A DNA stretch of 64,000 nt from contig JAAOMT010000648.1 in the NCBI GenBank assembly GCA_016748015.1, forward strand, positions 248,001 through 312,000, written 5' to 3'. The first letter of the stretch is position 1, and each line of letters begins with the position of its first letter. The notes under the pieces are model-generated. The model did no database searches, had not been told where the DNA came from, and saw only the letters and a program-made list of their open reading frames with translations. The position numbers and the translations under genes are program-made. Shown here piece by piece: positions 483 through 62,077 of the stretch. The DNA is from Geosiphon pyriformis uo1 (lineage: Eukaryota > Fungi > Glomeromycota).

Positions 483-1883
483 ATGTTCATAGGATTGATC
501 TTTTTAATTTTTTTAATTTGTTCGAGCTTGAAATTAAAGCTCGAAAATGAGCATAATATATTTGAAGTTACCAAACGATATGAAAAAATTGGTACATAAT
601 TATTTAAAAATTGAAGGGTAATCAAATAATTATAAAACTTAAATTATAATTCAATTCTTAGAAATAAAACAACATGAATTCACTTTGAAGAATGGATCAA
701 AATATGAAAAAAGAGATGATAAAATGAAGTTATTGACACAAACATCAATTCTCAGATATTTGGCTGATGTTGCTTTTTACGCTCATCAAACTTATTGTTT
801 ACAAAAAGATGGTGGTTTTATAGATTTGGGCATTTATGGTAAAGTTAGAATTAATCTAATGCTATTATTTCATAAAAATTTGAATTTTTCTTTTAATTTT
901 CATCTCTTTCCTGATTTTAAAGTTTGGGTCTCCACTACCTCTGAACCATTATCATTTAAAGATGGACCTGCAAAAGCAATTATTGTTCAATTAAGAGGCA
1001 TCGATTTAACTTATGATTTAATGGAAGGAATTTCTAAGGATTTATCAATGATTAAATATTCTTTCAAAAAAAATATTATGGTAGCCAAAGCATTTTATAT
1101 TGAACCGTATAGAGAAAATGCCAAAAACAAAATTTTGTTTATGCTTTCTACATATTTAAAAAATAATATTTATAAACAACATAAATTCGTCTTTACAGGA
1201 CATGGTTCGGGTGGAGGTAAGGTACTATTAATGATTCTTTTTGGCCTTTTTTTTTTTAATAGAATCTGTGAAAAATGCTGAACATTCTCACCCCAAATTC
1301 AATGATGGAATATCCCCAGCCCTAGCTGTGTACGCTGCCTTAGATTTTCGAAACTTTCTAATTGAAAATAAGTCTAAAAGGGATGTTGAAGTTGTAACTT
1401 TTGGTGAACCTCGAATTGGAACAAAATCTTTTTCAATATTTGCTGACTCAATGCTAAGTATTGCACGAGTCACTTTTGCTGACGATTTTGTACCATTGTT
1501 TTTTGCGGAAAAGTTGACTCATCATAATACTGAATTGTGGATTCCTGGGGATGATCATGAATGTAATTGTCCAGATTCTTTGGATGAACCTCGAAAGTTT
1601 CCATTAATTTATAATTGTGTCGTTGTAAGAGGGGATGAAAATTCGGTAAATGAAGATATTATTTTTGAAAAAAGCTTTTTTTTTTTTGCTTCAGTCATTA
1701 AATAATTGATTATATTTTTTTTTGATTATAAATTCGATTTCAAAGATGTGTAATAAACAATTTCACCAGGAAGATACAGCTTCAGTAAAAAAACCTCTTG
1801 AATCACGTGTTCATAACGGACCATACTTTGGCTACATTATGGGACAATGTAGTAAAAAAAGAACAAATTGGATAGAAATCTAA
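483..1883 (+). CDS. L1: class-3 lipase-like protein, nucleophile Ser->Gly (GHGSGG); 5 exons
   Basis: Hydrophobic start MFIGLIFLIFLICSS (483-591, GT-AG intron 592-661 joins in frame to the 685 ORF); AHQTYC; FTGHGSGG|ALA across intron 1218-1319; TFGEPRIG; ADDFVP; CNC; last exon HNGPYFG..MGQC, stop 1881-1883. Confidence 0.85.
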
Positions 1884-2860
1884 AGAAAACTCTGATAATA
1901 GGAAGTCAAGATTAATAAGTTTAGGAATTTTTTTCTTTAATTTTTAGAGATAAATTTTCCTAGTTTAAAAATATATAGGCAATAATAGATTATTCTCTGC
2001 ATTTACTTATTCTATATCTAGGCTAAAAAGAGATTTTATTTAATTGCGATTAGTTTTTAAGATAAAATTATTTCTCAGGTTAATTTTCCAATATCAAAGC
2101 TTTTGATGTTTCTTATCGAGAAATTATTGAATTCAAGTTAAAAAGATATGCTCTTAATGAGTTAAGAAAAAAATTCAGTTTTTGAGACAAGGTTTTAAGG
2201 AATTTTTTTGTGAAATGAATACATCTAGATACGGTAGAAATAATGAAATAGTTTATATATTTTGAAATTAAAAGATTTAAAATACAAACTTTAGAATTAT
2301 CACAAATGGATCTTTTCGAAATTTTTAAAGAATCAAAATTTTGAATAGAATGAAATATGAAGTGTGAGGATTTTTATGTTTCGAGATTTTTATTATTTTA
2401 GTATGACTTTTTTCCTAAAGAATTATCCTGATATGGAATGTTGAACTCATTCTGACGCACCACTGAGACCTTAACCAGTAATTTGAGAAATTAGGTGTTT
2501 GATTCGTTTTCACGACCATCTGAAAAAAAATCAGAATCAACATATGACACACGATCTTTTGATAGATTCGGGAAGTTCAAACAAATAACCAAAAAAATCA
2601 TTGAAAACTAAACAATAATAGACAGAAATCTATCAATGATCGATTCGTAGAATTTTGGCCAAATTTAATAGTTTATTATCAAAAACACTGAAATGATTAT
2701 GTAAGTAAGTGTCCAGAAAAAAACTTTTTTCAACAATGAACGATTCATAAAGTTTACCTTGAAAAAATGTCCTCGATTCTCAAAATAAAAATTTTAGAGA
2801 ATGTAAACACAACCTTATATATATTTCCGAGACGTTGATGCTTCTTTTTATTTTTATTAC

Positions 2861-2875
2861 AATAATAACAACAAC

Positions 2876-2923
<48 letters not shown>
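2861..2923. repeat. (AAT)n microsatellite with a few AAC units
   Basis: Directly visible trinucleotide run upstream of the UPF0014 gene. Confidence 0.95.
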
Positions 2924-2925
<2 letters not shown>

Positions 2926-5122: not shown

Positions 5123-6648
5123 ATGAAGGAAAAGAAGAATCTTTGTCTTCAATTTCTGTTACCTCTTTTCATAAAATTTGTTGTACCTATTACAATTGTG
5201 ATATTCACAATTGAGAACATTCAAAAAAATGGTCAATTTTCGATAAAACTTAAAAATAAAAAAGAATTTCAACAAAATTTCAATATACCTTATCCAAAAG
5301 AGATTGATTACAAGAATTTCACCGACAAATTTCTTAAAATTCATATAATAAAAAAGAAATTAAAAAATGAGGCTCTATCTAAAATCTGGTCAGTTAATAA
5401 TAAAGAGTCATTTCAAGATCCAAAGATTTTTCACAAATCAAGTTCAAAGATAAAAGGTCGAAGTTGGAGCTTTAGGTCAGAAGAAGAAGACCCTCAAGAG
5501 ATAAAAATTTTGGATTATTCAGATATTGATTTTATTGAAATTATTTCTCGGTTTGCTCATTGGTCAAATCAAGCTTATTGTAAAGCTGATGTGAACTTTT
5601 ATCAGGTGGTCTCAATTCGTGGAGCACTAGGTACTCTGTTCATTATTCAAGTGTAGAAAATTTTTTGATTATCTCTTTATCAAATCTGTAAACTCTTTTT
5701 TACTTTTGTACTATTTCAAAAGCTAAGGTATTTTTTGAACCAGAATTCAGAGTAATAGTAGCATCTTTTCAAGGGCAAATTTTTTCTAGCCTGCAATGGA
5801 CCAAGAGAAAATCTAATTTAGTTGCATACAAAAATGGTGGTCAACTTATCGATCGTGATGCAAGAGTCGATGAAATATGGTTTCAAGATGTAGAAGCAAT
5901 GAAAGATTCATTGATTTCTTTGATCAAACACTTGGTTTTATTAAATTTACAAAAGGAAGAGATATTTATTTGGCTTACTGGTCATGGAATTGGTGGTGGT
6001 AAGTGTTGATATTAAGCAGAGAAATCAAATTATTTTTTTAATATTTTTTCAAAAACTTTAACCAAAAAAACAGCATATGCAGTATTATCCGCTTTGGCAC
6101 TTGTATTGGATGGAAAACTCTCTTTTGAATTAGATCGTGATCAATTTAATATTCACTTTTGGACGATAACCTTTGGGCAACCGCGAATAGGGAATTCGAA
6201 ATTCAGTCAATTTGTTAATGATGAGCTTCAAGTTATTCGTGTCACTCATACAAATGATTACGTCCCACATTATCCTCAATTTTCATTTCACCAACAAATT
6301 TTGAAACATCACCAAGAAGAACATTGGTTGGCCCCACCGCCTACATGTGATTGCGAAGAATTGGACAAGATTCCGCTTTATGCTGGGTTAGCCGTTTACG
6401 TATGTAAAGGAATAGAAGAAAACAAGGTATTTTTTTTTTTTTTTTTTTTTAAGAAAAAAACCTCTGTAGAATATGTTGAGAAAGAAATTCTCTAATTTAA
6501 ACCGTCATTTCTGAAAATTCAATCGCACTAGAAATGTAATGCGGGACAAGTACAGACCGTTAGGAGCTCAATTTCTCATAACGGACCGTATTTCGGAGTA
6601 AAAATGCGGGATTGTCGCTCCTATGTCGACCGATTATATAGTTTATGA
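5123..6648 (+). CDS. L2: class-3 lipase-like protein, Ser->Gly (GHGIGG)
   Basis: N-terminal hydrophobic segment; NQAYC; LTGHGIGG|AYA; TFGQPRIG; TNDYVP; CDC; SHNGPYFGVKMRDC; stop 6646-6648. Confidence 0.9.
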
Positions 6649-8871: not shown

Positions 8872-10265
8872 TCATTTGCAGTTCTTCATGAAAATGTCAA
8901 AATAAGGTCCAAAATGAGGTGAAGGGGTATGAAGATCTAATAAATTTTGTCCTAATAAACCTTGTCCTTGATTGCATTCCTAAAAAAAAAAAAAATAGAA
9001 ATTTGGCAAAATAGAAATTATTATTTACTTTTTACAGTGAATCTACAATTGGATTTTTTTTAATAAATTTCATACCAAATTTTCACCAAAAATAGATTTA
9101 TCTTTATAATACCCTGGACATCTATATAGCTCAAAATAACCTTGATTTTCTGAAAAAATTGCATATGGATTTCTGCAATCGCAATCTGGATGTGAAATCC
9201 AGAATTCAGTTTCATGATGTTCGTAAAATTTTTCTCGTGGTGGGAACCGTGGAACGTGATCATTGGTATGTGTAATGCGATAAACGTTCAATACTTTGTT
9301 AATGTGGGCTGCCAGGACTGGATTACCAATTCTTGGTTGACCAAAAGTGACTACGACTATCCTCACATATTTATATAATCTTGTGAGGAGAATGTGTTTT
9401 CTGAAGCTTAGCGCTGCCAACACAGCGTACGCTGGATCGGTAAATTTTTTAATTTTAAAATAATTTCGAGAATAAAATAAAAGTTTAAAAATTTTCTAGA
9501 TTATCGTTAAAACTAATTTACCTCCACCAATTCCATGTCCCGTAAATGACATTCTCTTTAGACCATGTGGTCCAGGAGAAAATAAAGGAATTGAATCTTC
9601 CAGTAATCTAGGCATTATAAATTCAACTTGATCGTACCATGTTTTGTCTACGGATGCTCCTGAAACAAAAGGATACTTTATTAAGTAATTCTCTCTCAAA
9701 CTCCATTGCTTCGGAGAAAGGGCTCTATTGGTCCCGAAATAGGCAACTACTTGGTAGGATGTTTTATCGAGAAATATGTCGGCTAAATTTTGAACAAAAT
9801 TTTTTAATTTTAGCCAAGTGATCATTATAAAAATAACAGATATTCTTTTTTTAAATAAATAAACATACCAACAAAGTTGAGAAAAACTTTGCCGTAGTCG
9901 TTTGAATTGTGACAATATGCAAGATTTGCAAATTTTGCAAATTTCTTGAAAACACTTTTATAAATTGGATGGGAAATATTTTTCTTATGAGGATACAATG
10001 GATATAATTCGCCTATGCCAGTACCCAAATTACTTGATAAAGGCTGTACATTAGCAAAACTTTGGAAATTTCTATTTTCACGCTTCCACATCAAAATTAC
10101 ATTTTTTTGATTAAATCCTCCTACCCATCCAAAATATTTATAAAGGGAAAATAGTCCAAGAATGAAAATCCATAAAAAGATTAATCTCTTTAATCGCCAG
10201 TCATGTTTGATAAGAGAATTAAAATTTTCAGGTTTCCTTTTGAATGTGAAACAAAAAATTGACAT
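8872..10265 (-). CDS. L3: class-3 lipase-like protein, Ser->Gly (GHGIGG)
   Basis: ORFs 9825-10265, 9496-9915 and 9070-9423 plus last exon ECNQG..PHFGPYFDIFMKNCK*; ANLAYC, FTGHGIGG, TFGQPRIG, TNDHVP, CDC. Confidence 0.9.
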
Positions 10266-11122: not shown

Positions 11123-12692
11123 TCAACGATAATTCTTTCTGATGTTATTTAAATTTTGTGGGCCACATTCACTCATTAACACATTGAAATATGGACCATA
11201 ATGAACTGAAATGTCTCCGCTGACTGTCCCTGCAATACAATCCTAGAAAAAAAAAACCAAATGACTATCTTAAGATAGCTGAATTGTCTAGTGAAATGTT
11301 TTGACAATACTCTCACTTACAGGATTTTCACCGACAGAAATTCCAAGCTCATGTTCCCAAACGCCTCGACATTCAAATAATTCTACATCTTTTTGTGATT
11401 TTGGAATATTCGTACAATCACAATCCTGTAAAGCAATCCAGTATTCAATTTCATGGTGCTTAAACTCATCACTATCTCCGGAATTTATTGGAAACAAAGG
11501 AACGGGATCATTTTTATATGTCACTCGATAGACTTGATTTTTCAATAGATTATTCACATAATTTGCAAATTCTGCGTTTCCTATGCGTGGTTGTCCGAAT
11601 GTCACAACTGCAATGTCAACGTATATTTTTCCAAATATTTGGGTAAATTTCAAATCTTTCATGTATTCTGCGAAGCTAATAGCCGCTAGAACAGCATATA
11701 CTTATAATCGAAATAAAAAAATTCAGATTCATTAATTAATAGTTAAAATGAAAAATTAGACAAAATTTCACATACCACCACCAATTCCATGACCTGTAAA
11801 ACGCATTTGAAGAATTCTCAATTTCTGAGATTTGAATAAGTCTTCAATTTTTGAAATCATTCTTTCAATCATGGCTTCTACTTCGTCATACCAAATCATG
11901 TCCACAAGTAAATTTTGAATTCTCTTATACGATACCATTTTTCTTCTTTTCGGTCGGTTGGAAGGCTTCATTCCACGAAAGTAGGCAATCATCTCTGTTG
12001 TTCCTGGATCAAATACAATGTCAGCTAATTATGAAGGCAAAAATTCTCAGGTTTAGATAAATTTTCGAGGTTGGTAGATAAATTTTGATTGGAAAAATTT
12101 ATATAATTTTTTTTTTACCTATAATACCACTCTGAATTGCAATTTGACCTATTTCATTATTATTAGAGCAGTATGGATAATTTGCAAATTTAGCCATCCT
12201 GCCCAAAAACCCCAAAATCTCTGATTCTTTTACTAGTACTTTTGGGGGAGCTGGCCTTGGGAACGCTCCTAATGTCTCAATTGGATTAATTGAAATAAAA
12301 TCAGTACGTTTATTAATGGTCAACTCGGATTTTCCTCGGCGTGTCTCATCTCTGGTAACTTTGAATATATTATTTTCATTAAACTCTACAGACTTTGAAC
12401 GTCTTGTTAATATGCTATATTTGAGTCTATTTTTTGGAATTATAGGTTGTGAGATATTTTGTGAGATAGGTTGTGAGATATATTGTTCTAATGAAATATT
12501 TGTACGTAAAAAAATTTGCTCTCTTTTTTCAATATTAGCCGCAGTAAAATGGGAGATACAATTTGTGAAAATAACTGAAACCCATAAAGATTTCATAAAT
12601 CTTATTATCGAAAAGGAAAACAAAAAATAAAGATAAATATAATTAAGCGGTTTTATCAAAGGATAAATGATTTGCAAGTTTATCTTCGACAT
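11123..12692 (-). CDS. L4: class-3 lipase-like protein, Ser->Gly (GHGIGG)
   Basis: ANYPYC, YFRG, FTGHGIGG, TFGQPRIG, KNDPVP, CDC, last exon DCIAG..VHYGPYFNVLMSEC; start may be the downstream Met (MKSLWVS). Confidence 0.9.
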
Positions 12693-13377: not shown

Positions 13378-14824
13378 TCATAATTGAAAATCCTTACAAT
13401 TATTCATGGTAGTTCCAAAATACGGGCCAAAATGAGCTAATGAATTCCCAGGTGAAGCTCCAACATTGCAATCCTAAAGAATTAAGCAATTAAAACAATC
13501 AATCCGAGAGTAAAAAATCGAAAATCTTTGTAAAGCAAGCAAAGAAAGCAAGCAAGAAAGAAGAAAGAAAGAAAGAAAAAAGTAATCGTACCGGATTTTC
13601 TCCTACAGCGTTTCCAATATCATGTTCCCAAATACCACGACATTCATATAAATTATAGCTTGAATCTATCTCTGTGAGTCTTCGAGTTGTTTCACAATCA
13701 CAATCTCTTTTCGAAATCCAAAACTCTAATTCATGATGTATAAAATAAGGTAGGTCATCAGAATTCATAGGAAAACGTGGTATTGGATCATTTTTATTGG
13801 TGACGCGAAATATTTTGTCCTTTAAATTCAAATTAATATAGTTGGCAAGTTGTGGATTTCCAATACGTGGCTGACCAAATGTTATGACAGAAAAATCGAT
13901 TTCTAGATCTTTCCAAAATCCGAATAAACTTCCAGTATCTTTCGTCAGCTCTGTCCAAATTAAACCCGCTAGTACTGCATAAACTTTGGGAAAAAAACGT
14001 TAGAGTCATTTAATATTTTAGCGATTAATTCACATATAGTACTTTCGAAAACTTACCTCCACCAAGGCCATGACCAATGAAACAAAGTTTGAATTTTTTT
14101 ATTCCATGAGATCTTATCTCATATCCAATTTTTAACGTTAGAGATTTCATTAAAACCTTAGTCTCATTAAACCATATCTTATTTACGTAGAGACCTTTAT
14201 GGTTATTGTATTGAGACATTCCCTGCCAATCTATTTTCTCTCTTTTCAGATTCATATCTCTTCCCTTGAAATATGCAACTAACTCTTTAAACTTTTTGTT
14301 CCAAATAACGTCAGCTAAAGAAATAAGAGAATAATTTGGTCTTTTGAATTTTAATTTAAATATCTCACGAATTAATGGTGTGTCTTAACTTTGAAAAAAA
14401 ATTTACCAACAGCTCCTGGTACACCAAATCCAATATCGTTATTTTCAGGGAAGCAGTAGGCCATATTAGCAAATTTTGCCATCCTTGACAAGAAATATAA
14501 AATCCTGAACTCATTTACATTGATAACCGGGGGTGAAGGTGGTGAATTTTTTCCCCAACGATCTTTTGGAGCCGTTGCAATTTTATCTTTTCTGTTTAAA
14601 ATTTGACGTTTGAGAATCCGTTCTTGAATCTTTTCTTGTGATTGTGAATCAAGATTTATCAATTGAGAAAGTCCGTCTGTGTATGATTCTTGTTTTAGAA
14701 ATATATTTTTTAAACTAAAAGAATTTAAAGATAATGAATAAAAGTGAAAATTTATTGTCAATGTCAACAACCAGAGAATAACCAGGATTTTTTGAGCGAA
14801 AATTTTGGTAAACATATGAACCAT
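13378..14824 (-). CDS. L5: class-3 lipase-like protein, Ser->Gly (GHGLGG)
   Basis: ANMAYC, YFKG, FIGHGLGG, TFGQPRIG, KNDPIP, CDC, last exon DCNVG..AHFGPYFGTTMNNC. Confidence 0.9.
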
Positions 14825-15601: not shown

Positions 15602-17031
15602 ATGAGGTTCAATTTTTTTTATATATCTTTAACAGTAAAAACCCAAAATCAATTCGCTCAAAAAGCAAAAAATATTAATAATAAATCCTCAGAAATCATG
15701 CTTAGTGATCACCTCGACCATTTAAAAATCAATGTTTTAGTCATATCATCATTATTACTGATATTTCTCATTGTGCTATCCAAAGATTTTGCCTGTCGAG
15801 AACCTCGTCTAATGCAAGAAAAAACATCTTCACTTTTAAAAAAGCAAAAAGGAAATCCCGTCATCAACTTTTTACCAGATAATAAATCGTCTATTATTCC
15901 AAATTCCACATTTCCCAAGGCTCAACGAATAACGCCTTCCATTATCAAAAGAATACAAATATATCCTTTAGAACGAATCACCGATTTCACTTTGCTGCAT
16001 AAATTACAAAGAGCCGCATTCATAGCAAGTTTGACATATTGTTTAAACGAAGATACCGATGAGGTTTCTCCGAGTATGTTAGGTAAAATAATTCCAAACG
16101 ATTATTTTGCATGACTTGGCTAATTCTTTGCTCACATTTTATCCTAAATTTCCGAGCTTAGCTAAGGCTGAAATTATCCAAGGAAAAGCAATTAACTTTT
16201 TAATCAGAGGAATCGATCCCAATGATCTTGATAACTGGGCATTTCGGACATTTAGACTTGAATCGAATTCGAAATTTTTCGAACCTAATGGTGTTAATGG
16301 ACGATTGGAAGCTACATTTTCCCAACAAATGTATCTAGCCTGGGAAAAAATGGATGAGAAGTTAAAAAAGTCCTTAAAGGAAATGAATCCTTATAATTTA
16401 ATTGAACGCAATAAAATAAATTTGATTGGTCATAGTTTGGGAGGAGGTTAGGTGGCCTCATTTTTCTTAATTTTGAGCTTATATGCAGTAGATCTAGCCG
16501 TTTGAAAAATAATTATTTATTTATTTGATCAGTATACGCTGTACTTGCTGGGGTTAAATGGGCAATAAATATGCCAGATGTCAAGTTCACGGTGTATACA
16601 TTCGGGCAACCTCGTTTAGGAGATCTCGAATTTGCTAAAACGATCAACATGCTCACTAGAAAAAATCTTGGTATTTATCGAGTAACTCTGAACGATGACT
16701 CTATTCCAAGGTTACCGTTGGACAATATACCACAAATTTTTCATCATCATCAAACTGAATATTGGATATCACGGGAGTGCAATTGTAATGGCGATCCGGT
16801 TGTATACAGGTGTATTGGTACGGTCATAGATCCCTCGACTGGTTATGTTCGAGAAAGTCGGGTAGGTTATTAAAAAAGAGACGTGATTTTGAGAATCATG
16901 AAATTTTCAAATGGCAAATATTAAAAAATTACGTTTAATAGGATTGCAACAATCGTTACACAACGCCAACAACATTATCACATAATGGGCCCTATTTTGG
17001 ACACACCATGGGTTCTTGTCCTTCTTTATAA
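15602..17031 (+). CDS. L6: class-3 lipase with intact Ser-Asp-His triad (GHSLGG)
   Basis: SLTYC, LIGHSLGG (Ser codon AGT 16434-16436), TFGQPRLG, NDDSIP, CNC, SHNGPYFGHTMGSC; start could be Met at 15698. Confidence 0.92.
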
Positions 17032-18240
17032 TGATCTTATTTTGTTTCCAAAAAATATCCTATAGTATATCACACATTGGATAAGATTTAAAAAAATAAT
17101 AGATAAATTTTGAAGGTAAAAGAAGCTTCAAAGATGTCTTTTGAAAAATGTTGCAAAGTGCATAGCGAATTTTGTGTAACAAGCGATTATACTCAAAAAA
17201 AAAATTAATAATTCCATTTCGTAGACAACTTTTAGATATTAAGATTTTTATTTTTATGGGAAACAAAATAAGGATGTGTTGATATCTTGAATATTTTAGA
17301 TAGGTGGGGGATAAGTTGGAATAAATTTTGTTTGAAATATGTGATTGATATTGATTTGGAAAGGAATCAAATTGAAGAGCAAGGCTTTTGGTAATTTTGG
17401 CTGCCAATTATCAAGATTAGAAATATTAAAAGTATTGTTTTGAAAGACAAATTGGTGAATATTTTCTTCATTTGTTTATAAATAACAAAGGTTTAATAGT
17501 TTTGGGAATTACCTTCATTATTTATAGTATTTCAATGCAAAATATTGAATTTTGAGCTACGAAAATGTTTAATTTGAGTTAATAACCCAATAAAGGGCTG
17601 TAAATTACTAAAATTTATGTACTTTGCAAGTCAAGGTTTTTTTTTTTTTGGGGGGGGGGGCTAATTATGAGAAAGTTGAGTTGATTTATTTAGAACAATC
17701 ACGTGTAGTTAACAGATACCTGATAAAATCAAAGCAACATCCACATAAATGTGATAGACTTGATTTCCACTATTTCCAAAGTGGAATTAATTTCAGCTTC
17801 ACATTAAAAATGAATCTGTCGGTCAAGGAGCGTACCAAGGAAAAGTTAATCTACTTCTGATGTTAGGGTGAAATGTTCGTCGCAAGAAGATTACGGGGGT
17901 CAAAATGTTCATAAAAATTCTTTGTATTTGCAAAAAATTGCTACTAAACTAGATACAGAGTGAGTAAACATTTCATGTCCCACGGTTGGCAAACATTTAA
18001 AATCACTTGGATATACCAATTACTACCTCCTCAATGCTGACGAAAATTCACTTTAATAATAAACAACTAAAAAAATTTTTATTTTATGATACAGCATTTC
18101 AAACAAGTCGAAAATCTGTGTACAATCATTATGTTGATCAATTTAGTCGCAGTTGATAAATTTTATATCTTTATATCAATAAAATCAGGAACTGTGATCA
18201 AATTTGTGTATTCGTCCAAGACAATTTTATGTAAATCATT

Positions 18241-37746: not shown

Positions 37747-37777
<31 letters not shown>

Positions 37778-43729: not shown

Positions 43730-45305
43730 TCAGGGAATAAAAATACTGTTTGGCCAATACTCGAAGTGACATTGTCCCATTTTAAAATTAAGGTATGGGC
43801 CAACATGTGGATGAACCGGATTTTCGTTTTCGGCATTTAGTCTAGAGCCAGATTGTGATTGAACCGAATTGGCACAGCTCTATAAAAGTGATTGCGAGAA
43901 GCATATTATACAATCTTAATTAATATCATGTTATAATTATAAACAATTCTTAATCCGAATAACTTTCCTCACTCTCAACTCCAGGACTAGTGTCACATTT
44001 GTACACCGTATTAGCTGAATCAGCAATCCAATATTCTAATTTATGATGTGTATACCTGGTCTCCGAATCGCTGGCCGGCATTTGTACAAATGGATCAATT
44101 GTATGTGTAAAGCGATATATTTTAAAGTTTTGAATATTATCAACGTATTCAGCAAATTCTTTGTTTCCAATCCTTGGCTCTCCAAATGTGGTGATTATTA
44201 TTTGTTCGTCTTGAAATGTGGGAATATTTATCAGCGCTAGACCTGCAAGCACTGCATAGGCTATAAGGATAAAGATATTGAACTCATTTTGGAATTTAGA
44301 AGAAATCTCAATAAAACACTTTTTATGATGAGAGAAGTTTATTTATACCACCGCCGAGACCATGTCCAGTCAAAACAAATTTCCATTCAGGTCTTATTTT
44401 TTTTATTCTCACAAGGTTTTTTAAAATCTTGACTTGAGCACCATTAAATCTTTGATACAAGCCAGCATGAACTTTTGCGAAAGAAGAAAATGCAGCAGTA
44501 GGAGGATAATCGATTTGGCGGGTATTTTTTTTAAATTCAATTGGATGTCTTTCAACACCGAGAAAATTGAAAATAATTCGTTTCTTTTGTGGTTCCAATT
44601 GAGCAGAACCTGGAATGGATTAAAAACGTTTAAGTTTTAGAATCAATTTCATTATTCCCAAAAATGCCAAATGACCCGAAATTTACCTAAGATATCATTT
44701 GAAAACTTGGAGGTTTGGTCATTTAATTTTAAGCAATATGCTAATGCAGCCCATCTAGCATATTCTTCTAAACCTTTCAGTTCTTCTATTGGCACGAGTG
44801 TTTTCAAAGTGTCTGTTTCTTGTGTTGATTCTACGGCAAACAATGAATTTATTTTTCCTTGTATTTTATTTGAAGAGCCTGAGTTTTCAATCGAAAGATT
44901 TACTGGAAATGCAATATAGTTAGATTTGTTGTCATTTGTGTAATTTGAGCTTGTAAAAATCTCATGAGGGTAGTAATTGTCAATCCTCGAGTTATCCAAA
45001 TATGAAGGTTCTTCGTTGAACGAGGACATTAATGGGACCAAGGGATCTACTGCGGTCATTTCTGTTTCGAGAGAACCAATAACAAAAATTAAAAAAAGCA
45101 TTATTTTTTCAACTAAAAACGAGTTCTGTCCTTGCTCACCAACTAGAATATCTTGATCATAATCATTATTCTCATTTGAAAACTGATCTAAAATTTGTCG
45201 CGTTAGCAATCGTTGAACAGGTTTAGCTTGAATCAGACATTCATTAAGTAGGCCAAGAAGCAATAAATAAAGGATGAAATGTTTCGAGCCCCGCTCTAGA
45301 ATCAT
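43730..45305 (-). CDS. L13: class-3 lipase-like protein, Ser->Gly (GHGLGG)
   Basis: Signal peptide-like start; AALAYC; KVHAGLY; LTGHGLGG; TFGEPRIG; TIDPFV; last exon SCANS..PHVGPYLNFKMGQC. Confidence 0.9.
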
Positions 45306-46455: not shown

Positions 46456-48143
46456 ATGCTCCATAATCTTTTGACAATCAAGGTGGCTTTATTATGCCCA
46501 TTTATTGTAAAGCTTTTGCTCATTTTCCCATTACTAACAAGGGCAAGCCCAATTGCCGAAGAATATGCCGAGGAAACACAGAATTTACTTTCACAAAGTA
46601 ATGGTTTCATGAATTCAGAATCGAATTTAATTTTACACGACATGAATCTCGATGAGTTGTCATCATTTGAAAAAAGCGAGAAAGATATCGTAGATTCAGA
46701 TGAGATTGAAGCCTCTATTACATTACCAGAAGTTTCACAAGAGCAACAAAATTTAAACGAGAATCAAAACCTATTTGACGAGGTGGCTAAAAAATTCGAT
46801 TCACTTAATCTAATTCCTGCTGAAGGAGGTTTAACTGATGAATTAAGGGAAGAAAGTGGCTCAAATATCGACGAGATAGTTTCATATTCAACGGAGGAAC
46901 CAATATCAGGACCTTCCTTTGTTAATATAAAAAATGCTAAAACAAAAAAAGGGATGCTTGACCATGCGCGTGATTTCATTTTTGATGTGCTACATCATCG
47001 ACAAGTTTTAAGCAAAAAAGATAAAAATATCAGCGATCTACAACTCTATGCAAAAGTTGCAAACGTTCCTTATTGCCAACCATATAACCGAATTTCAATA
47101 AGCTATTTCGGTTCGTTGAATCTAATCACTTTAAAAAGTTTACAAGTTCTAATTCTTTGAAAAATTTTTTCATTTCTAAGGAGCTGAGCAAACCAGACAA
47201 TCAAATGTTAATGTCATCGTAGTGACCTTTGGAGCCCATAAAACAAGTTTACACGATTGGAAACGTGATAATGTCGTAATGAAAACTTTATATCCAGCTT
47301 ACGTAACAGAAAAAGAATTTCATCGAAAAAATTTTTTCGACTGGAAAAACGAAATGGTTCATGGAGAAATGTATCGCGACTGGTGCCCCCATCAAAGAGA
47401 TTTTTTAAACGAAATGAAGAAATTGGTTGAGAAATATCCTAACCATGGCATTCGGTTTGTTGGTCATGGATTAGGCGGAGGTTTGTCTCGTATTTTCTAA
47501 CAAATTTATTGTCAAATTTAAGCTTTTTTAATCTTTTATTTTAAATTCTCTTCAAAGCATACGCAATATTCGCGATGCTTGCGTTCATAATAAATTATCC
47601 AAAAAGTAGGGAAGTAGCGGCTTATACATTTGGCCAGCCACGTATTGGGAACCGAGCATTTGCCCGATTTGTCAATGAAATGATATTTTTGAAAACAATA
47701 AAAGTTTATCGTGCCACTATATTAGGTGACCCAATTATTCTTTGGCCTGATACATCGAATATGTCCGAAACTTCCCAAATAACGCCATTTCAACATCATG
47801 AAACGGAATTCTTTATCGATGAGGAAAACCAAGTGGTTCGTTGCCAGAGTGAAAATGATGAGGGTACTGAAAACAAGGTAAATTTTCCAAACCATTAAAT
47901 GAATTGTTTTAAAGCTATCAAGTTTTTAGCGAAAATTCAATATTGTAGAGTTGTTCTGCTGGTCATAATCAACAAAACACTGTAGATAAAAATACTGGTC
48001 CATATTTTAGCATTCCAATGGGAACTTGCATCGAGCCCCAGTCCATCATAATTCCGGAGACTGGCCAAAATTTCATCAATCATTATTTTTATGTTGAATC
48101 TAGTGATTATAAACACAACATTTTACATAGAAGAAAGTATTAA
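46456..48143 (+). CDS. L14: class-3 lipase-like protein lacking both catalytic Ser (GHGLGG) and His (KNTGPYF)
   Basis: Signal + acidic propeptide; ANVPYC; FVGHGLGG; TFGQPRIG; LGDPII; last exon SCSAG..DKNTGPYFSIPMGTC with extended tail. Confidence 0.9.
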
Positions 48144-49679: not shown

Positions 49680-51450
49680 ATGAAGTGTTTAAATATTAAT
49701 AATTTGCTAAATTTCCAAAAAAAGCCAAGAGTTTCAATAACAGAAACGTTTCATGCACTGACCTTAGTTTCTTTCATATTATTTACGTTTTCTTTGAGTT
49801 ACCTTGTCACTTTCGCATATTCTTCACCTCTTTTAACAAATAACAACTATGATAATCAAAGACGACAAATAATGAACCTAAATTTTGATTCTGAATTTCA
49901 AGATCCACTTTTAGCTTCTTCAAGCGAAACAGAATTCAATGAAAATTCTCAACAGTTGGAAACAATAGATTCTTTAACTTCTCAGTCTGAATTATCGAAT
50001 AATCAAATTAAGCCTCAGGAGTTTAGTTCGAATCTTTTAGGAACTGAACAGGGAGAGTCGATAGATATGCAAGTACCTGATTTATTCGCAACAGCTGATA
50101 TAAATAATAACCCTGCAAGTGGCTTACGTGAGTTATGCTGTAATGTTTTTATAATTTAAAGTTAATTCTCTTGACCATTAATACCTTTCAACTTTCAATT
50201 GAAAGAAACATCAATCGATCAAGATGTGTTCGATAACGGAGGGTCTAATCCAACAAAAGTTTCTTTCGAATTCGGAAAATGGACTGAAGAGCACGTGAAA
50301 GATGTTAATTTCGTTTCAGGGAGCGATGCGGTTGAAGACAATTTAGCGTTATATGCTCGAATGGCAAATACGGCTTATTGTTTCAAAGAAAAAGTCTCTG
50401 CAAGATATTTTGGTAGGTCATGACTTTTCTTTACCATTTAGTTTTTGACATTTTTTTTTAACGCAGAAAATGGAATCAACTATTTCCATTAGATTTTGTT
50501 TTTTCTCAAGTTTGGACTAAATTTCCCCTATCTTCTTTCGTCCTTAGTCAATGAAAATTTTAACTTTCGGTCTCTCGTAACAGTTTTTAGCGGGCTCGAA
50601 TCTGACTTGCATGAATACCAGAGTACAACCAAAATTGATATAACTACATATCCCGAGAATAACTTGCTAAAAGAACTTGAATTTCGTTCAAATGTTTGGT
50701 CAGATGGATCAAAGAATCCACATGTTCACACTGAAATTTATCGTAATTGGTTGAATTACCAACCAGAATTTTTGAACCAAATGAAAATAATGGTTTCAGA
50801 TAATAAATATGCCGTATTTCGGTTTGCTGGGCATGGATTAGGTGGTGGTATGTTGTGTTTAATTGTGAGCTTGATCTTGGGATCTTTTGGTAAATGTATT
50901 TTAATAATTTAAACGTTTAAAATATTTGTCGCAGCATATGCAATCTTTGCTACACTCACATTTATGGCAAATTACCCAAATAATGACGTGAATACTTACA
51001 CCTACGGAGAACCACGTATTGGTAATAGAGAATTCGCAAAATTTGTTAATACCCTAATAACTAAGAAGATGTTATATGTATATCGGGCGACAAAAATCAA
51101 TGACCCAGTTGTTCTCTGGCCCAATATTCCTCTATCATCAAGAGGGGATATTTTGCCCAATCCACCATTTTCTCATCATTCTACCGAATATTTTCAGGAT
51201 GAGAACAATCGTGTTATGAAATGTAACCGAGGGGAGCAAGTCTTGGAAAATAAGGTTTAATTCATTTTACTAAAGGAATAACTTGAAATTTAGAGATTGT
51301 GAAAAATCTTTCGATAATTTTTATTCATGCAAATATTTTTTTCCTTCATAGAATTGTGCAGCAGGCAGGAGATCTGCTTTCAACGATCATAACGGGAAAT
51401 ATTTCGGTGTTAAGATGGGTGAATGTGTGGAGTTTAATATTGGTAACTAA
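49680..51450 (+). CDS. L15: class-3 lipase-like protein, Ser->Gly (GHGLGG)
   Basis: Signal + acidic propeptide split by an extra intron; ANTAYC; FAGHGLGG; TYGEPRIG; INDPVV; DHNGKYFGVKMGEC. Confidence 0.9.
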
Positions 51451-51852: not shown

Positions 51853-53495
51853 ATGCATCTTTTTATTCTCGATTTTTCATCTTTCAGATTACCATCATTG
51901 AGCTGTAAGGCTTTGATGTTATTTTTTTGGTTATTTTACGTATCATTTCCAATAGCAGATTCAAATCCGATTTTGTTTGGAAGCGAGCTTACATTTGAGA
52001 ATGAAAAAAAAATGCCATATCAAATGTCAGCAGGATCTGACATTTCCCCTTCTAGGAAAGATTATATTCCGTTTGCTAAACCAACTATAAAATCATCGAA
52101 TAGTATTCTCGGCAATATTATTATTTCCCCAGATCTTGAAAGACAATCGGAGGATGAGAATACTTTGAACCCAAATATCGACATAGCTCAGTCCCAATTT
52201 AATGAAGCATCGGGAATTTTGGGAAGAACTCATTTAGCTCCAAATCTTGACAATACATTCCAAGAAATAAATCTTTACGCTGAAAATAATAAAATTCAAG
52301 AATTTGATATTGAAAGTGAACTTCTTGAAAATATTAAAGAATCTATGAATCTTCGTCGACGAATTTCTTCCGAAAATTCTCTTATCGCAGATTTCAGGAA
52401 ATATGCACGATTCGCAAAATTTGCATATTGTATTTCGGAAAATTCTGCGGCATATCTTGGTAGAATCAAAATACTTTTCCTTTCCCAACGTTGAAAAAAT
52501 GTTTTTTTTCATATATAAAAAATTCCTGCGAGAATTTTTGCTAATCGTTTTTCTAACTTTGCATTTTCAAATAGTGTCAAAAAAAGCAGAAAAAAACTCA
52601 ATAATCGTAACATTTCACGGTTTAGAACAGGATTTAAAAGATTACATGTCAAAAAACATCACCAATTTTGAATCATATCATGTATACGATGACATAAAAT
52701 TTCATGACAAGTTTTCATACTCATGGCAAGAGCAAAAAGTACACATGAAAATATATGCGACTTGGAGAGGAATACAAGATCAATTTTTGACACAAATTAA
52801 GGAGATTATAAATCTATATCCCGATTACCCTATTAATTTGACCGGTCATAGTTTGGGTGGAGGCAAGATCTCTGAATATTTCTTGCATAACAATTTTTAA
52901 TTCATTAAAAGTTGAAAGATTCCGATTTTATTATTATTATTATTATTATTATTAGCTTTCGCCATATTTGCATCCCTCGCTCTCGTTGAAAATTTTTCAA
53001 ATCATCTTCAAGTTACAGTTTACACCTATGGTCAACCGCGATTAGGCAATGATGCTTTTGCAGCCTACGTCAATACTCTAATGACCAGACGTAAAATAGA
53101 AATATTTCGTATAACAAGAGCAGATGATCCAGTGGTTCAGTGGCCACAATTACCAAAAGCTACTGAAAAAGGAGCAAAAATATTTCAATTCAATAGGAAT
53201 GAAAATGATAATTCAATTTTTAGGCATCACGGCAATGAATATTGGCTTACAGAGAGTGAAACAGTTTATGAATGTTGGATGAGTAATGGTGGGGATGAAA
53301 ATCCGGTTTGTGTTTTTTGGATTTAGGCCTTATTTAAAAGTTAAAATGTTTTAAATTGGATATTTTTCTTTTTAAACCTTCTAGAATTGTGCGAATGGTC
53401 AAATCCCAGGTCCTTTCTATAAACATCAGCTTCAATATTTCGAGATAAGGATAGATCAGTGTGAAAATTTCAAGAAACTTGAGTTGAACCAATGA
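51853..53495 (+). CDS. L16: class-3 lipase with Ser-Asp-His triad (GHSLGG)
   Basis: AKFAYC; LTGHSLGG (AGT 52850-52852); TYGQPRLG; ADDPVV; last exon NCANGQ..YKHQLQYFEIRIDQC. Confidence 0.9.
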
Positions 53496-54147: not shown

Positions 54148-56146
54148 CTAATGATAACCATTATTTGGTACTTCCTTTGGTGGTTCTTTTTTACGAAAGA
54201 TAGATGGTAATTTGATGTTTTGAACCGGCGCTACATCTAGTGGCAACTTAATTTCAACACATTTTCCCATTTTTACTTTGAAATATGGTCCCGTATGGTT
54301 AGCAAAACTTTTAGCGTCTCGACCAGTTGCTGCGCAGCTCTAAAGGAACAAAGAATAAAATTTAACCGATACGAGAGTGTCTCAAAACAATAAATCTTAG
54401 CAAAACTGTTTATTTGAAAAGGCTTTTTTAAAGGTCACGAACCTCATTTTCCAATCCATTATCTTCCGGTCTACATTCAAATGTGTTGTTGCCATCCGAC
54501 CAGAATTCACTTTTGTGATGGAGAAAGGGAGGCGCATCTACAATTCCTGTAAATCTATTAGGCTCTTCAGAATTCGAACTAAGAGGTGGCCAGTGTATCA
54601 TGGGATCTTGAGCAACTGTAGCACGGAATATTGTAAATCGACCAATATCGATTACAGCCGAAATAAAGTTTCCAAAATCACCATTGCCAATACGTGGTTG
54701 ACCATAGGTGAAGATACCAAAATCACGGCGTCCCGATGATCTAATCACAAATGCTATTGCGGCAAAAACTGCGTATGCTACAGACAAAGAAGAGATTTAC
54801 CAAAAAAGAAATAGTTGATGATTTTCTAAGTAAACTTGTAAAATTTTTCACATACCCCCACCAAGTCCATGTCCGACAAATCGGATAGGCGAATTTGGAT
54901 TTTGATTAGCGAGTGGTTCAAATGTATTGAAGAATTTCTCTTGATAACCCATCCAGTTTGTATAAATTTGTTTATGAACCTTTTCTCTCTTCCATCCATT
55001 TGAATACCATCTTTTATGAAAAGTTTTCTCCTTATCAATAACAGGATAACTCATTTGATCGACTATCCCCTTTTTCATGTAATCTTCTAGCTCAGTCTCT
55101 AATCCGGCAAACGCCACAACAACAATTTTTTTTTTATTTTTTCGTCCCAATGCATTCGCTGGAATTAAAAAGATTAATCAATAATGTCTTGAAAGGAAAA
55201 AGAATTAAAGGAAAAAAGAAAATTCTTCTTACTATAAAACCGAGTTGAAATTTTTTCTTTTTTGCAATAAGCGGCGTTGGCCATATGTGCATATAATTTG
55301 AGATTAATAATTTTTGGATCATTTGGAAGAAGATAGGTTCTTTTTAACATGAAGTTCTGTGAAGGGTCTGTTTCACCACCTTCCATTCCACCTTCTCCAT
55401 CACCACCTGGGATTCCATCACCACCTGGGATTCCACCGCCGCCTGGAAATCCACCACCGCCTGGAAATCCACCGCCACCTGGAAATCCACCACCACCTGG
55501 AAATCCACCTGGGAATTGAGCGAGAATTTTTTCATCAGATTGGGTATTTTTAGCTGAAATTGACGTTTGGGGGTATGCGTCCTCAAGATTTAAATTCAGT
55601 TGTGATTCTTCGTCATTTTCATTTATATCTATTTATCAAATGACCTGAAGTTATTTAGTTTTGAAATCAATGTTCGGCTATGAGCTCACAATGTTATCAA
55701 ACAAAACTGAAAATGGTATTACCAAAATTTGTGTCGAGATTACTAGATGCTGTAAATTCGAATGGATTTGATGATGATGATGATGTTTCTTCGATAAATT
55801 TAGAATTAATGTATGGCTGCGAGTCCATCGAGCCTTGATCGTACAATTCTCCATGGTTAAAATCACCTGCTGCGGGGAGAGCACTTTGATATTCTATAGG
55901 TATGGATTCCAAATCATTGAAGTCAAGTTCATTTTCATTTAATTGGCGTTTTTCGGTTTTAAATCTGGCCATTTCGTTTGGCTCTTTTCCCCAAAATGAG
56001 TAATTTGCGAGAAAATAGCCAAAAAATGTGACTAAAATCAGAAAGGAAATCTTTTGTTTTAAAGACCATTTGGCCCGATTCCAGTGATTATTTAATGCTG
56101 GAGATGAGGAAAAAACTAATGAAAGGGGTATCGACTCAGTTGGCAT
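54148..56146 (-). CDS. L17: class-3 lipase-like protein, Ser->Gly (GHGLGG), with FPGGGG repeat in propeptide
   Basis: TM/signal; acidic propeptide; ANAAYC; FVGHGLGG; TYGQPRIG; AQDPMI; last exon SCAAT..NHTGPYFKVKMGKC. Confidence 0.9.
55397..55515 (-). repeat. Coding 18-bp tandem repeat (FPGGGG x4, IPGGDG x2) in L17
   Basis: ttt cca ggY ggY ggt gga units, in frame with the downstream MEGGETDPS...ANAAYC ORF. Confidence 0.9.
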
Positions 56147-59220: not shown

Positions 59221-59294
59221 TTCCTAAAATCATAATTACCAAGACTATATTTGGTCCCCTTTCCTAAAACCAAAAAAAAAATTTTTTTTGTGAG

Positions 59295-59954
59295 ATGAAA
59301 ATGATTGGTGGCAATAAAGCCTTCCTTTTATGGTTCAAAACCACTATTGTCACTCATTATATGAAATTTTCGATGAAATATCACCTACACTTGAATCCTT
59401 TCAAAATATTATCACTTTCTTTTTTTCTTTTACCCTTGATTCTTCTTTACTTTAACATGTTAAGTTTCCATGAAATTGCTCCCATTTTTGAAACTCCAAA
59501 TTTGATACGGAATCTCGAAGTCATACCCAAATCTTTTCAGAAACGGCAGACAAAATTAGTTTTTCCAGAGATAAGGTTTAAAGCTTTGAACCGAATTGAG
59601 AATTCATTCTATATTAAGGGTAATCCTACTTGGTCTAAACAAACAAATGCAGAGTCTTCTTCATCTGTACCAAAAGAAACTGAGAAACAAAACCCTGAAC
59701 AAACAAATTCAGTGTCTTCTTCGTCTGTACCAAAAGAAACTGAGAAACAAAACCCTGAACAAACAAATTCAGTGTCTTCTTCGTCTGTACCAAAAGAAAC
59801 TGGGAAACAAAACCCTCCTAATGGACAGTCATTAAAAGACCCCTCAAATAACTATTCTCATCCTCATTCTCATAAAACTCAAAACCCAGATAAAAATAAC
59901 CTTGTAATTGATTGTGACTGCCAAAATAAGCTACAGCGAAGCTTAAAACTTTAA
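59295..59954 (+). CDS. Predicted secreted/type II membrane protein with three 20-aa repeats; resembles the lipase-family prepro region without a catalytic domain
   Basis: Hydrophobic ILSLSFFLLPLILLYF, QKRQ dibasic site, (QTNSVSSSSVPKETEKQNPE)x3; 3' end and splicing uncertain. Confidence 0.6.
   Translation: MKMIGGNKAFLLWFKTTIVTHYMKFSMKYHLHLNPFKILSLSFFLLPLILLYFNMLSFHEIAPIFETPNLIRNLEVIPKSFQKRQTKLVFPEIRFKALNRIENSFYIKGNPTWSKQTNAESSSSVPKETEKQNPEQTNSVSSSSVPKETEKQNPEQTNSVSSSSVPKETGKQNPPNGQSLKDPSNNYSHPHSHKTQNPDKNNLVIDCDCQNKLQRSLKL
59638..59817 (+). repeat. 60-bp tandem repeat, 3 near-identical copies, coding
   Basis: Unit aacaaacaaattcagtgtcttcttcgtctgtaccaaaagaaactgagaaacaaaaccctg seen on three consecutive lines. 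Confidence 0.95.
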
Positions 59955-60593
59955 ATTATTCTAATTTTTTTGAAATGGAAATAATAACTAAATGGAAATG
60001 ATTTCTCAGATGGCAAAGCTGGTGGTTTCTAAACTCAAACTTTATAAATTCTAGAGATTGTCCCGTCAATTTTAAAGCATAATATAGTTTATATTCAAAA
60101 AAATGGTTGCATAATTCAAAAATATTAATATTTTTTATGATATTAAAATATAATTTTCCAATTTCATATTTGACATATTCAGAATATGTAATAAAAAGAC
60201 CTTATAACTTAAAGAAATCCCTTTCATTTAGAGCGTTACTATTTTTTAATATTTTTTAATGAATAAGAAAAAATTCATTCATTTTTAAAATAAAGTTTCT
60301 TTGAAATAAAAATTTTAATTTTAATTCACTATGTCAAATAGTACAGTTTTCTATGAAAAAATTATTTCTAATTTATATATACATTTACATGTATTTTCAA
60401 TTATGCTCAAAGATATATTTGAAATGGTTAAATGGGGATTGCAATCGTCGGGAAAACCTTTTTTTTATTTTTTTTGTTATTGATGTCTGAATTGATAAAC
60501 ACGTGAAATCTTTTTAAGACATTGAATTTTTTCAAAATGTCCCCACTGCAATAGCAGCCCTTTGGTCAAAAGAGAAAGCTATTCAAGTCACCC

Positions 60594-62077
60594 ATGAAAG
60601 TCTTGTTGAAATGCGAAAAATGTATCTGGATATTTATCTTAATTACCACGGTGTTCGATAAATTTACAATATATTGCCAAAAAATTTCTTCCTCCTCCTT
60701 AATAAACCAAAAGACGCACTCTAAAAGGAATAATTCAAACTTGGAAATTCTACCAATAAATTTTATTCCCGTTTTAAAAAGTGAACATTTAAAATATGAA
60801 AAGTTTCCTTTATACGTTCGTGAAAATAAATTATTGATCCTGGCAACTCAAGGATTTGGCAAATACACAAAATCATCACCGCCAAAAATCATAGTCAAAG
60901 ATCCCGAAATTATAACTTTATTCACATCAATGGCACAAATGGCTAACATTCCATTTTGTAAAAACAGTGATACGATGACTATAAAGGAAAAGGGAATTAT
61001 AGGTAATTAATTTTTGTTTTGATTAAATTAAATTTTTATCATTAATTGCGATGCTTATGTTTATGTTCAAAACACGATTTTCTTTTTTAAGGTAACATTA
61101 TTTCAGTAGAAAAATCTGGAAAAATTTTTGGGTACTTTCGAGGTATAGCTTTTCTTTGAATTTTTGATTCTTTCAAGATATAAAACTATCCTAAAACGAA
61201 ATTTCTTTACCCAAGGTCCAGAAATGAATGCAAAGGAATGGGCTCGAAGAAAATCAGATTTTATGAAATTTAATATCGCTCCGAAAGGCTGGTCAGTGGA
61301 TAATACCTGGGCAAAACCATTTTTAGCATTAGACGGCCCATTTGCTACAATTTTATCAAAAATTATTCACTACTGTGAGCAGATGAAAAAAGTTGAACCA
61401 GAGATATATTTAACAGGTCATGGAATTGGAGGAGGTGAATTTTTATTGCAAATTGAATTTAAAATTTCGAATCTGGTAATATATATATATATATTACCTT
61501 TTCATTCAATTTTGTAGTCTATGCTCTTTATGTTGGAATACTATTGCACGGTTCAAGGTCAATATTTGAAAAAACGATCCCAGGTCAAACTCGGCACTTG
61601 ACGATTGTTACCTTTGGACAACCAAGACCAGGAAATGAAAAGCTAGCGCAATTCATTCAATTCAAAAAGAAAAATTTTAAAGTTTACAGAGTAACTAATA
61701 AGGACGATATGGTACCTCACTATCCCATAAAATCTTCTCAGGGAAAACGATACTCTCATGTTGGGAGCGAGTATTGGATTAGTGATATTAGTTGCGATTG
61801 TTCAACAAAAAACCCAAAGACAAAGGATTCCTTGTCATTTGCTCTTTACGAGTGTCCAAGTGTCTTTTCAGAGGATTCAGATGGTGTTGGAGAAAATATG
61901 GTAATTTATAAAGAAACTTTCAAAAAGGGTTAATAAATTCTGATATCAAAATTTTTTTTAAATTTTTAGAATTGCAATCTAGGAACACTTGGGACAAGTA
62001 CTTCCACACACTATGGTCCCTATTTTGGAACTACATTTGGAAGATGTGAAGATTATCAACCAAAAATTGGTGAATAA
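60594..62077 (+). CDS. L18: class-3 lipase-like protein, Ser->Gly (GHGIGG), one additional intron
   Basis: ANIPFC; YFR|GPE across an extra intron (about 61144-61215); LTGHGIGG; TFGQPRPG; KDDMVP; CDC; THYGPYFGTTFGRC; stop 62075-62077. Confidence 0.9.

Follow-up and report, generated by a model that had tools for sequence, protein, structure and literature searches.

Here we describe an array of 18 class-3 lipase paralogues in the fungus Geosiphon pyriformis, 15 of which carry Gly at the position of the catalytic nucleophile Ser. The array lies in a 64-kb window, C590:248001-312000 of the 128-Mb assembly (29% G+C), which is the whole stretch of DNA analysed here and to which all coordinates refer unless stated otherwise; the copies are called L1 to L18. 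Judged from their sequences, the 15 Gly copies are not lipases by the canonical mechanism, as an acyl-enzyme intermediate could not form in them, and their description as non-catalytic, selected, secretory proteins is well supported. With moderate confidence, we favour the reading that they are selected non-catalytic binders that work outside the cell or in a lumen, with an acyl chain or lipid as the most plausible ligand.

The array and its nucleophile position

A six-frame scan of the window returned exactly 18 nucleophile elbows, 15 with Gly, encoded by GGA, GGT or GGC, and three (L6, L12 and L16) with Ser, encoded in each case by AGT. A family hidden Markov model (HMM), which we built from 39 public family members and ran on all stop-free segments of both strands, recovered the same 18 loci, each with four core exons at matching profile positions, and detected no extra loci or fragments. 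Both scans agree with the original prediction, which had been made from the letters of the window alone and had named 18 class-3 lipase paralogues with this division into Gly and Ser and the elbow motifs given in Table 1. The array continues to the left of the window, where a copy with Ala (GHAVGG) lies at C590:242701, 5.3 kb from the window edge. The 10 kb beyond the right edge of the window and the contig segments 208-218 kb and 228-238 kb contained no family member, indicating that the array ends at L18 and starts between 238 and 243 kb.

Both profile and fold place these proteins among the class-3 lipases. Pfam Lipase_3 (PF01764) matched two Gly copies (L7 and L5) and two Ser copies (L6 and L12) at 62-79 bits against a cut-off of 22 bits, and a Pfam scan of the full-length models found Lipase_3 alone, with no additional domain and no EP domain; the proteins stop 25-65 residues past the His motif. 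Across the genome, a lipase scan gave 163 scored exon matches among 783 candidates. An AlphaFold2 model of L7, computed from an 89-sequence family alignment, had a mean predicted local distance difference test score (pLDDT) of 80, with values above 90 in the core, and a predicted template modelling score (pTM) of 0.81. When this model was searched with Foldseek, the top matches were the Rhizopus lipase, Aspergillus feruloyl esterase A (FaeA) and the Rhizomucor, Yarrowia, Malassezia and Thermomyces lipases (among them 6a0w, 1uwc, 1tic, 1tgl, 3o0d and 5ap9; E-values of 1e-13 to 1e-9 and TM-scores, normalised to target length, of 0.6-0.78), with EDS1 and PAD4 far lower. The fold matches included two nucleophile-less mutants that, according to their entry titles, were solved with bound ligand, namely S146A lipase with oleate (1gt6) and S133A FaeA with ferulate (2bjh).

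In phmmer and profile alignments with the Thermomyces lipase, the family Gly falls on Ser146 and the N-D-x-V-P stretch on the Asp201 motif, and the profile alignment places a conserved Trp behind the F-R-G strand on the lid residue Trp89. With Gly at the position of Ser146, the canonical acyl-enzyme mechanism is impossible for the Gly copies, in line with the non-catalytic character originally proposed for them. The copies thus share with class-3 lipases the profile match, the fold and the Asp, and in 17 of 18 cases the His, while the Ser of G-x-S-x-G is found only in L6, L12 and L16. These three, which keep Ser, Asp and His, are probably real hydrolases.

Apart from the nucleophile, much of the former active site is retained. 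Exon 3 holds the invariant T, G, P, R and G of the T-[FY]-G-x-P-R-x-G motif, the Asp at the catalytic position (18/18), and an invariant H, E and C. The last exon follows the pattern C-x-x-G ... H-x-G-P-Y-F-G ... C, and its His is present in 14 of the 15 Gly copies. Among the 15 Gly copies, 14 have Ile, Leu or Val behind the nucleophile position; the oxyanion position behind the FRG strand has no conserved side chain. Two subgroups can be told apart. In the first, L1-L11 plus L18, a Cys-Asp-Cys insertion (reading Cys-Asn-Cys in L1, L6 and L11) is present and six Cys are conserved; the second, L12-L17, is without the insertion and has four.

The gene structure is equally constant. All 18 copies have three introns at homologous positions, in phases 1, 1 and 0: the first lies about 10-25 residues past an N-terminal A-x-x-A-Y-C motif, the second directly behind the elbow, such that the third 'G' of a straight translation is a split codon plus GT donor, and the third behind an E-N-x motif. 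Splice sites are GT-AG, save for a GC donor at intron 2 of L16 (52863), which stands alone among the 54 modelled core introns. Once spliced, all 18 models are open from ATG to stop, with lengths of 256-489 codons as modelled, at a core identity among copies of 23-43%. A random frame at 29% G+C meets a stop about every 12 codons; that all 15 Gly copies have stayed open at such divergence argues against neutral decay. The earlier statement that the Gly copies keep their frames, splice sites, T(F/Y)GxPRxG motif, Asp, His and cysteines despite being otherwise very divergent therefore holds.

Expression evidence comes from a single public RNA run (X1). Spliced RNA contigs of L17 skip 54340-54442, 54778-54855 and 55159-55232, which are exactly the three modelled introns and have CT..AC at their ends, which reads GT..AG on the minus strand; another contig spans 55273-55629 and is spliced to an upstream first exon. 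No contigs were found for L15 or L16 in this run, which says nothing about whether these two genes are silent. For the suggestion that the Gly copies could be untranscribed, L17 provides a counterexample. We also considered two artefacts. A Gly elbow created by a wrongly placed splice site is ruled out, as the L17 transcript includes the GHGLGG exon and is spliced right behind it, and A-to-I RNA editing, which turns A to G and not G to A, is unable to bring back the Ser.

All 18 proteins have an N-terminal hydrophobic segment, which in L1, L15 and L17 is encoded on an upstream exon. By eye and hydropathy, about half of these segments resemble cleavable signal peptides, and the remainder resemble signal anchors that start 25-50 residues in. 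It is reasonable to regard the Gly copies as exported, given their putative signal or anchor segments and the conserved disulfide cysteines, and this is what had been predicted. A variable and often repetitive linker joins the hydrophobic segment to the lipase domain. Repeats in these linkers include G-G-F-P-G-G-G-G units in L17 (55380-55520, minus strand), a 17-residue unit that occurs three times in L18 (59600-59830, plus strand) and I-S-Q-P units in L4 (12400-12480, minus strand).

Family size, serine-glycine switching and selection

To count the family across the genome, we searched for the elbow plus its donor as a strict DNA pattern (G-H-X-x-[G/A]-G and then G|GT); this gave 436 matches compared to 10 for a reversed control, which excludes chance. 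Gly occupies the nucleophile position X in 300 of the 436, followed by Ser in 49 (40 with AGY and nine with TCN codons), Ala in 42 and Asp in 10; about 35 have other residues, with Phe, Tyr, Ile, Cys and Asn seen. The small residues Gly, Ser, Ala and Asp together account for 92% of elbows. The nucleophile elbow has a strained backbone that tolerates only small residues, which predicts a spectrum in which Gly exceeds Ala and Ala exceeds Asp. The dominance of Gly can be explained by this fit to the strained elbow and by the fact that a single A>G transition turns an AGY Ser codon, the type used in 40 of the 49 Ser copies, into a Gly codon. The original prediction had stressed that the replacement is always Gly and never another residue. 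This is true inside the window, but genome-wide about 20% of elbows have Ala, Asp or others, so that it is a property of the window sample and not of the family. The accompanying proposal, that Gly keeps a pocket open for ligand trapping, is not needed, since the single transition and the strained elbow are sufficient to explain the Gly.

We additionally examined how widely the family occurs. Searching 1.84 billion representative proteins with a profile yielded 7327 matches; in the best 150 of these, the recognisable elbows had Gly in 91 cases, Ser in 18, Ala in 5, Arg in 4, Asp in 3, Cys in 2 and Phe in 1. All 27 proteins with non-Ser elbows that were looked up were Geosiphon singletons, and the three GHSLGG-type matches looked up belonged to a fly, a mushroom and an entomophthoralean fungus. 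A metagenome scan used a four-sequence alignment as query and considered loci with T-F-G-Q-P-R-I-G or R-V-T-x-x-N-D motifs; in its 80 best loci no non-Ser elbow was found, all being ordinary lipases and each recognisable elbow having Ser. Matches in the ESM Atlas were generic Lipase_3 clusters only. Word-index protein searches with a single protein, an 89-sequence profile and the region from the elbow to HHxxEYW returned Geosiphon proteins only, in searches that had no reach into other taxa. Going by public data, the family appears to be confined to Geosiphon pyriformis, a provisional statement because the sister lineages are poorly represented in the collections searched. We found no published description of the family in the literature on Geosiphon lipases or on class-3 lipase expansions in Glomeromycotina.

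Ser and Gly copies are intermingled on the tree. A large tree of 136 family members, inferred with the nucleophile column masked, requires at least 14 changes between Ser and Gly, or at least nine when weakly supported branches are disregarded, compared to about 21 when labels are shuffled. In a more careful tree of 17 window copies (L1 left out) with outgroups, the Ser copy L16 is sister to the Gly copies L14, L15 and L17 with support of 97/93, L12 (Ser) pairs with L13 (Gly), and L6 (Ser) pairs with L10 (Gly). Forcing the three Ser copies together was rejected by the approximately unbiased (AU) test (p=0.0016), as was forcing them together with the Ser outgroups (p=0.0035), which indicates several independent switches within the array alone. 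Parsimony does not distinguish repeated loss of Ser from its regain.

Since the window copies are too divergent for a meaningful synonymous rate (dS), we measured selection, as the ratio of nonsynonymous to synonymous rates (dN/dS), on young Gly duplicates from four other clusters in the genome. Seven independent Gly-Gly pairs gave a dN/dS of 0.66 (bootstrap 0.55-0.81). The last-exon rule had mis-called some loci of one cluster, C378, and recomputation with exons 2 and 3 only gave 0.69 (bootstrap 0.55-0.87). The Ser baseline is a single Ser-Ser pair with a dN/dS of 0.70, many Ser-type loci elsewhere not being modelled by the gene-model rules; the Gly copies are no more relaxed than that pair. 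Constraint is distributed unevenly along the protein. The ratio is lowest in the strand carrying the Asp (0.15), followed by the segment running from Asp loop to H-H-x-x-E-Y-W motif (0.37), the elbow with helix C (0.39) and the last exon (0.51), and rises through the Cys-Asp-Cys insert (0.75) and the lid (0.85) to reach 1.0 in the helix that precedes the elbow and 1.5, from few codons, in the loop that follows helix C. The dead active-site scaffold is thus held by purifying selection and the entrance and surface diversify. The claim that the Gly copies are not decaying stands, on intact genes, L17 RNA and a dN/dS below 1 with a constrained core; neutral evolution does not describe them as a group (0.66, and 0.15-0.4 in the core), but some young pairs lie near 1. 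The copies combine the features of pseudoenzymes, namely loss of the Ser, intact frames and splicing, selection and, for L17, a spliced transcript.

Gene models and neighbouring features

The GenBank proteins G9A89_006752 to 006761 map to the window. The original prediction had expected automated pipelines to call these copies lipases; GenBank in fact names the family proteins 'hypothetical protein', and several of its models are fused or cut short, as specified in Table 1.

Table 1. Models of the 18 lipase-like copies, in window positions; exons of minus-strand copies are given in the direction of transcription
Copy	Residue; elbow motif (position)	Span	Strand	Exons	Remarks
L1	Gly; GHGSGG (1198)	483-1883	+	putative signal-peptide exon ~483-596; core exons 724-838, 923-1216, 1326-1645, 1746-1883	First-exon join and intron 1 donor (839 or 815) uncertain; fused in GenBank to UPF0014 neighbour (P0154)
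L2	Gly; GHGIGG (5980)	5123-6648	+	5123-5630, 5723-5998, 6074-6426, 6532-6648	
L3	Gly; GHGIGG (9523-9540)	8872-10265	-	10265-9869, 9782-9522, 9431-9076, 8979-8872	
L4	Gly; GHGIGG (11777-11794)	11123-12692	-	12692-12119, 12024-11776, 11700-11321, 11242-11123	Mostly corresponds to C-terminal part of GenBank model P0002
L5	Gly; GHGLGG (14058-14075)	13378-14824	-	14824-14407, 14314-14057, 13983-13592, 13473-13378	343 contiguous residues match GenBank P0021 (G9A89_006754); Lipase_3 65.9 bits
L6	Ser (AGT); GHSLGG (16428)	15602-17031	+	15602-16082, 16162-16446, 16533-16861, 16942-17031	Full Ser/Asp/His triad; matched by P0037 residues 1-362, GenBank model continuing into downstream DNA; Lipase_3 78.9 bits
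L7	Gly; GHGVAG (24597)	23814-25263	+	23814-24288, 24358-24615, 24679-25067, 25156-25263	Model residues 9-409 identical to whole GenBank P0023 (G9A89_006757, 401 aa)
L8	Gly; GHGIGG (29397-29414)	28716-30290	-	30290-29792, 29692-29396, 29303-28939, 28841-28716	C-terminal 306 residues matched by P0026
L9	Gly; GHGVGG (33270-33287)	32620-34149	-	34149-33633, 33556-33269, 33201-32822, 32745-32620	GenBank P0004 fuses L9 and L10
L10	Gly; GHGIAG (35790-35807)	35156-36726	-	36726-36099, 36028-35789, 35650-35331, 35251-35156	See L9
L11	Gly; GHGIGG (39709-39726)	39069-40652	-	40652-40067, 39971-39708, 39610-39243, 39164-39069	Split codon after elbow is Ser; P0032 identical over 331 residues
L12	Ser (AGT); GWSLGG (42429)	41344-43050	+	41344-42109, 42199-42447, 42551-42837, 42934-43050	Asp and His present; GenBank P0149 (G9A89_006761) without last exon; Lipase_3 74.1 bits
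L13	Gly; GHGLGG (44350-44367)	43730-45305	-	45305-44687, 44609-44349, 44260-43980, 43879-43730	No E-N-x motif before intron 3; sole in-phase donor GTTGAG at 43980, more doubtful than any other splice site modelled; GenBank P0053 runs through this donor to a stop, without last exon
L14	Gly; GHGLGG (47462)	46456-48143	+	46456-47110, 47181-47480, 47558-47877, 47949-48143	Sole copy with Asn for His
L15	Gly; GHGLGG (50829)	49680-51450	+	core exons ~50175-50412, 50548-50847, 50935-51254, 51352-51450	Putative signal-anchor exon upstream, within 49680-50156
L16	Ser (AGT); GHSLGG (52844)	51853-53495	+	51853-52459, 52575-52862, 52956-53305, 53385-53495	Full triad
L17	Gly; GHGLGG (54857-54874)	54148-56146	-	~56146-557xx, 55629-55233, 55158-54856, 54777-54443, 54339-54148	
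L18	Gly; GHGIGG (61416)	59457-62077	+	core exons ~60594-61002, 61216-61434, 61518-61900, 61970-62077	GenBank P0030 starts at 59457 and has an additional exon, 61091-61144; long repeat-bearing N-terminal linker

Other features lie among the copies. A multi-exon gene for a UPF0014 membrane protein (PF03649; 62 and 35 bits on two exons) stands between L1 and L2 (3049-4446, plus strand), and an amidase-signature gene (PF01425; first exon 87 bits, last exon 63 bits) splits the array between L6 and L7 (20794-22638, plus strand). At 18235-19199 (plus strand), a three-segment open frame contains an H-Y-H-T-L-R-H-I motif reminiscent of HD-type phosphohydrolases; its first exon had no Pfam match. A further open frame, 154 codons long and shortly downstream of L7 (25505-25966, minus strand), also had no Pfam match. 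Simple repeats were found downstream of L1 (2763-2947), where a long AAT/ATT-type run occurs, and downstream of L10 (34859-35074), where a purine-rich dinucleotide-like run reads as G-R or G-E repeats.

Function of the glycine copies

Most likely, the Gly proteins bind something instead of digesting it, and that this is a lipid is plausible from the residues they have kept. According to our favoured reading, they would act outside the cell or in a lumen, being either secreted or held by a signal anchor; binding would take place in the former substrate groove, with an acyl chain or lipid as the most plausible ligand, and the fast-evolving lid and loops would diversify recognition from one paralogue to the next. 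We regard such a ligand as the most plausible because the lid Trp, the hydrophobic residue behind the nucleophile position, the Asp, the His and the disulfides have been kept. It is also the most economical guess, since the elements of the groove persist and nucleophile-less mutants of related enzymes hold ligands in crystals (1gt6 and 2bjh).

Several observations weigh against this reading. At 0.66, the mean dN/dS is high, and in some young pairs the ratio reaches about 0.9-1.0, so part of the family may be drifting. Retention of the Asp in all 18 copies and of the His in 17 could mean residual or altered chemistry. In addition, the single RNA data set covers three genes and contains a transcript for one of them, L17, and signal peptides were distinguished from signal anchors by eye and hydropathy only.

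The alternative that retains the most weight, although we consider it rather unlikely, is that the Gly proteins are protein binders, decoys, regulators or effectors rather than lipid binders, with the lipase fold a mere stable scaffold. They might be partners or inhibitors of their Ser paralogues, or might form a surface repertoire directed at Nostoc or other microbes. Consistent with this, the fastest-evolving parts (lid, helix before the elbow, loop after helix C and Cys-Asp-Cys insert) lie on the surface, the expansion is huge, clustered and specific to one lineage, and long, variable, repeat-rich linkers stand between the signal segment and the domain. The class-3 lipase-like EDS1 and PAD4, which work through protein contacts, were moreover among the fold and profile matches. 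However, constraint is strongest in the regions lining what was the active site (elbow, Asp strand and His exon), the lid Trp has been kept together with the hydrophobic residue behind the nucleophile position, and the proteins have no additional interaction domain comparable to the EP domain in EDS1.

It is improbable that many Gly copies are functionless by-products of rampant tandem duplication that remain intact through youth or slow decay. The high mean dN/dS and the young pairs close to 1 would fit such an origin, as would the lack of transcript contigs on L15 and L16 in the single run and the two of 20 additional Gly loci sampled elsewhere that the gene-model rules did not model; yet the 15 Gly copies of the window keep frames, splice-site pairs, invariant fold residues and cysteines at 23-43% identity, the core evolves at a ratio of 0.15-0.4, and L17 RNA is spliced. 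Least probable of all is that the Gly copies are still enzymes by a non-canonical mechanism such as a His-Asp-activated water, another nucleophile or transfer chemistry: all 15 keep the Asp, 14 keep the His and the Asp strand is the most constrained region, but we know of no class-3 lipase that works without its Ser, the Ser-to-Ala mutants of Thermomyces lipase and FaeA were, by their entry titles, solved with intact ligand, the oxyanion-position side chain is variable, and the Ala, Asp, Phe and Tyr found at the nucleophile position genome-wide do not point to a single alternative chemistry.

Known systems resemble the Geosiphon family in part. The secreted fungal class-3 lipases (those of Rhizopus, Rhizomucor miehei and Thermomyces lanuginosus, and Aspergillus FaeA) belong to the same Pfam family, have the same lidded alpha/beta-hydrolase fold, and align with it at the AYC motif, FRG strand, lid Trp, G-H-x-x-G-G, G-x-P-R-x-G-N, N-D-x-V-P and C-terminal H-x-x-x-Y-F-G...C motifs. 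Disulfide cysteines and, as predicted for the Geosiphon proteins, secretion are also common to both. Unlike these enzymes, the Geosiphon family has Gly for Ser in 15 of the 18 window copies and about 70% genome-wide, Cys-Asp-Cys insertions, a long variable N-terminal linker and about 440 copies per genome. In plants, EDS1, PAD4 and SAG101 likewise use a class-3 lipase-like domain in a role that needs no hydrolysis. These are intracellular proteins with a C-terminal EP domain that form heterodimers binding nucleotide-derived signals, in contrast to the Geosiphon family, which contains no EP domain, carries disulfides and signal or anchor segments, and is larger by a factor of hundreds. Neuroligins, in which Ser is replaced by Gly, and dipteran yolk proteins are extracellular proteins that have lost the nucleophile and kept the fold for binding or adhesion, but they are small animal families of the carboxylesterase type B and pancreatic lipase types, respectively. 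The pattern of expansion is comparable to that of the RNase-like effectors of powdery mildews, which comprise hundreds of clustered, fast-evolving secreted paralogues that keep the fold core and have lost the catalytic residues; the fold and the kind of symbiosis differ.

Taken together, our results describe a family whose scale is new: non-catalytic relatives of alpha/beta-hydrolases are known, but not some 440 genes in one fungal genome, about 70% of them nucleophile-less. One study (PMC11134847) reports that Glomeromycota genomes, including that of Geosiphon according to the work it cites, are without fatty acid synthase, which would make a lipid-handling role with the cyanobacterial partner attractive. 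A more specific proposal, which we offer as speculation and judge unlikely, is that the family forms a diversified repertoire for lipid capture or recognition at the interface between Geosiphon and its endosymbiont Nostoc, in which hundreds of hydrolysis-dead shells with variant lids would hold or shuttle cyanobacterial acyl lipids and the change between AGY and GGY codons would repeatedly toggle paralogues between cutting and holding. The repeated switching between Ser and Gly by a single transition offers a natural series for the change from enzyme to binder, and possibly for the reverse. So far, the family has been seen only in the one fungus with cyanobacteria living inside its cells. If lipid binding is true, it would bear directly on the way in which a fungus auxotrophic for fatty acids acquires or senses lipids of its bacterial partner, and if something else is bound, the family would represent a new effector-like repertoire in a mutualist.

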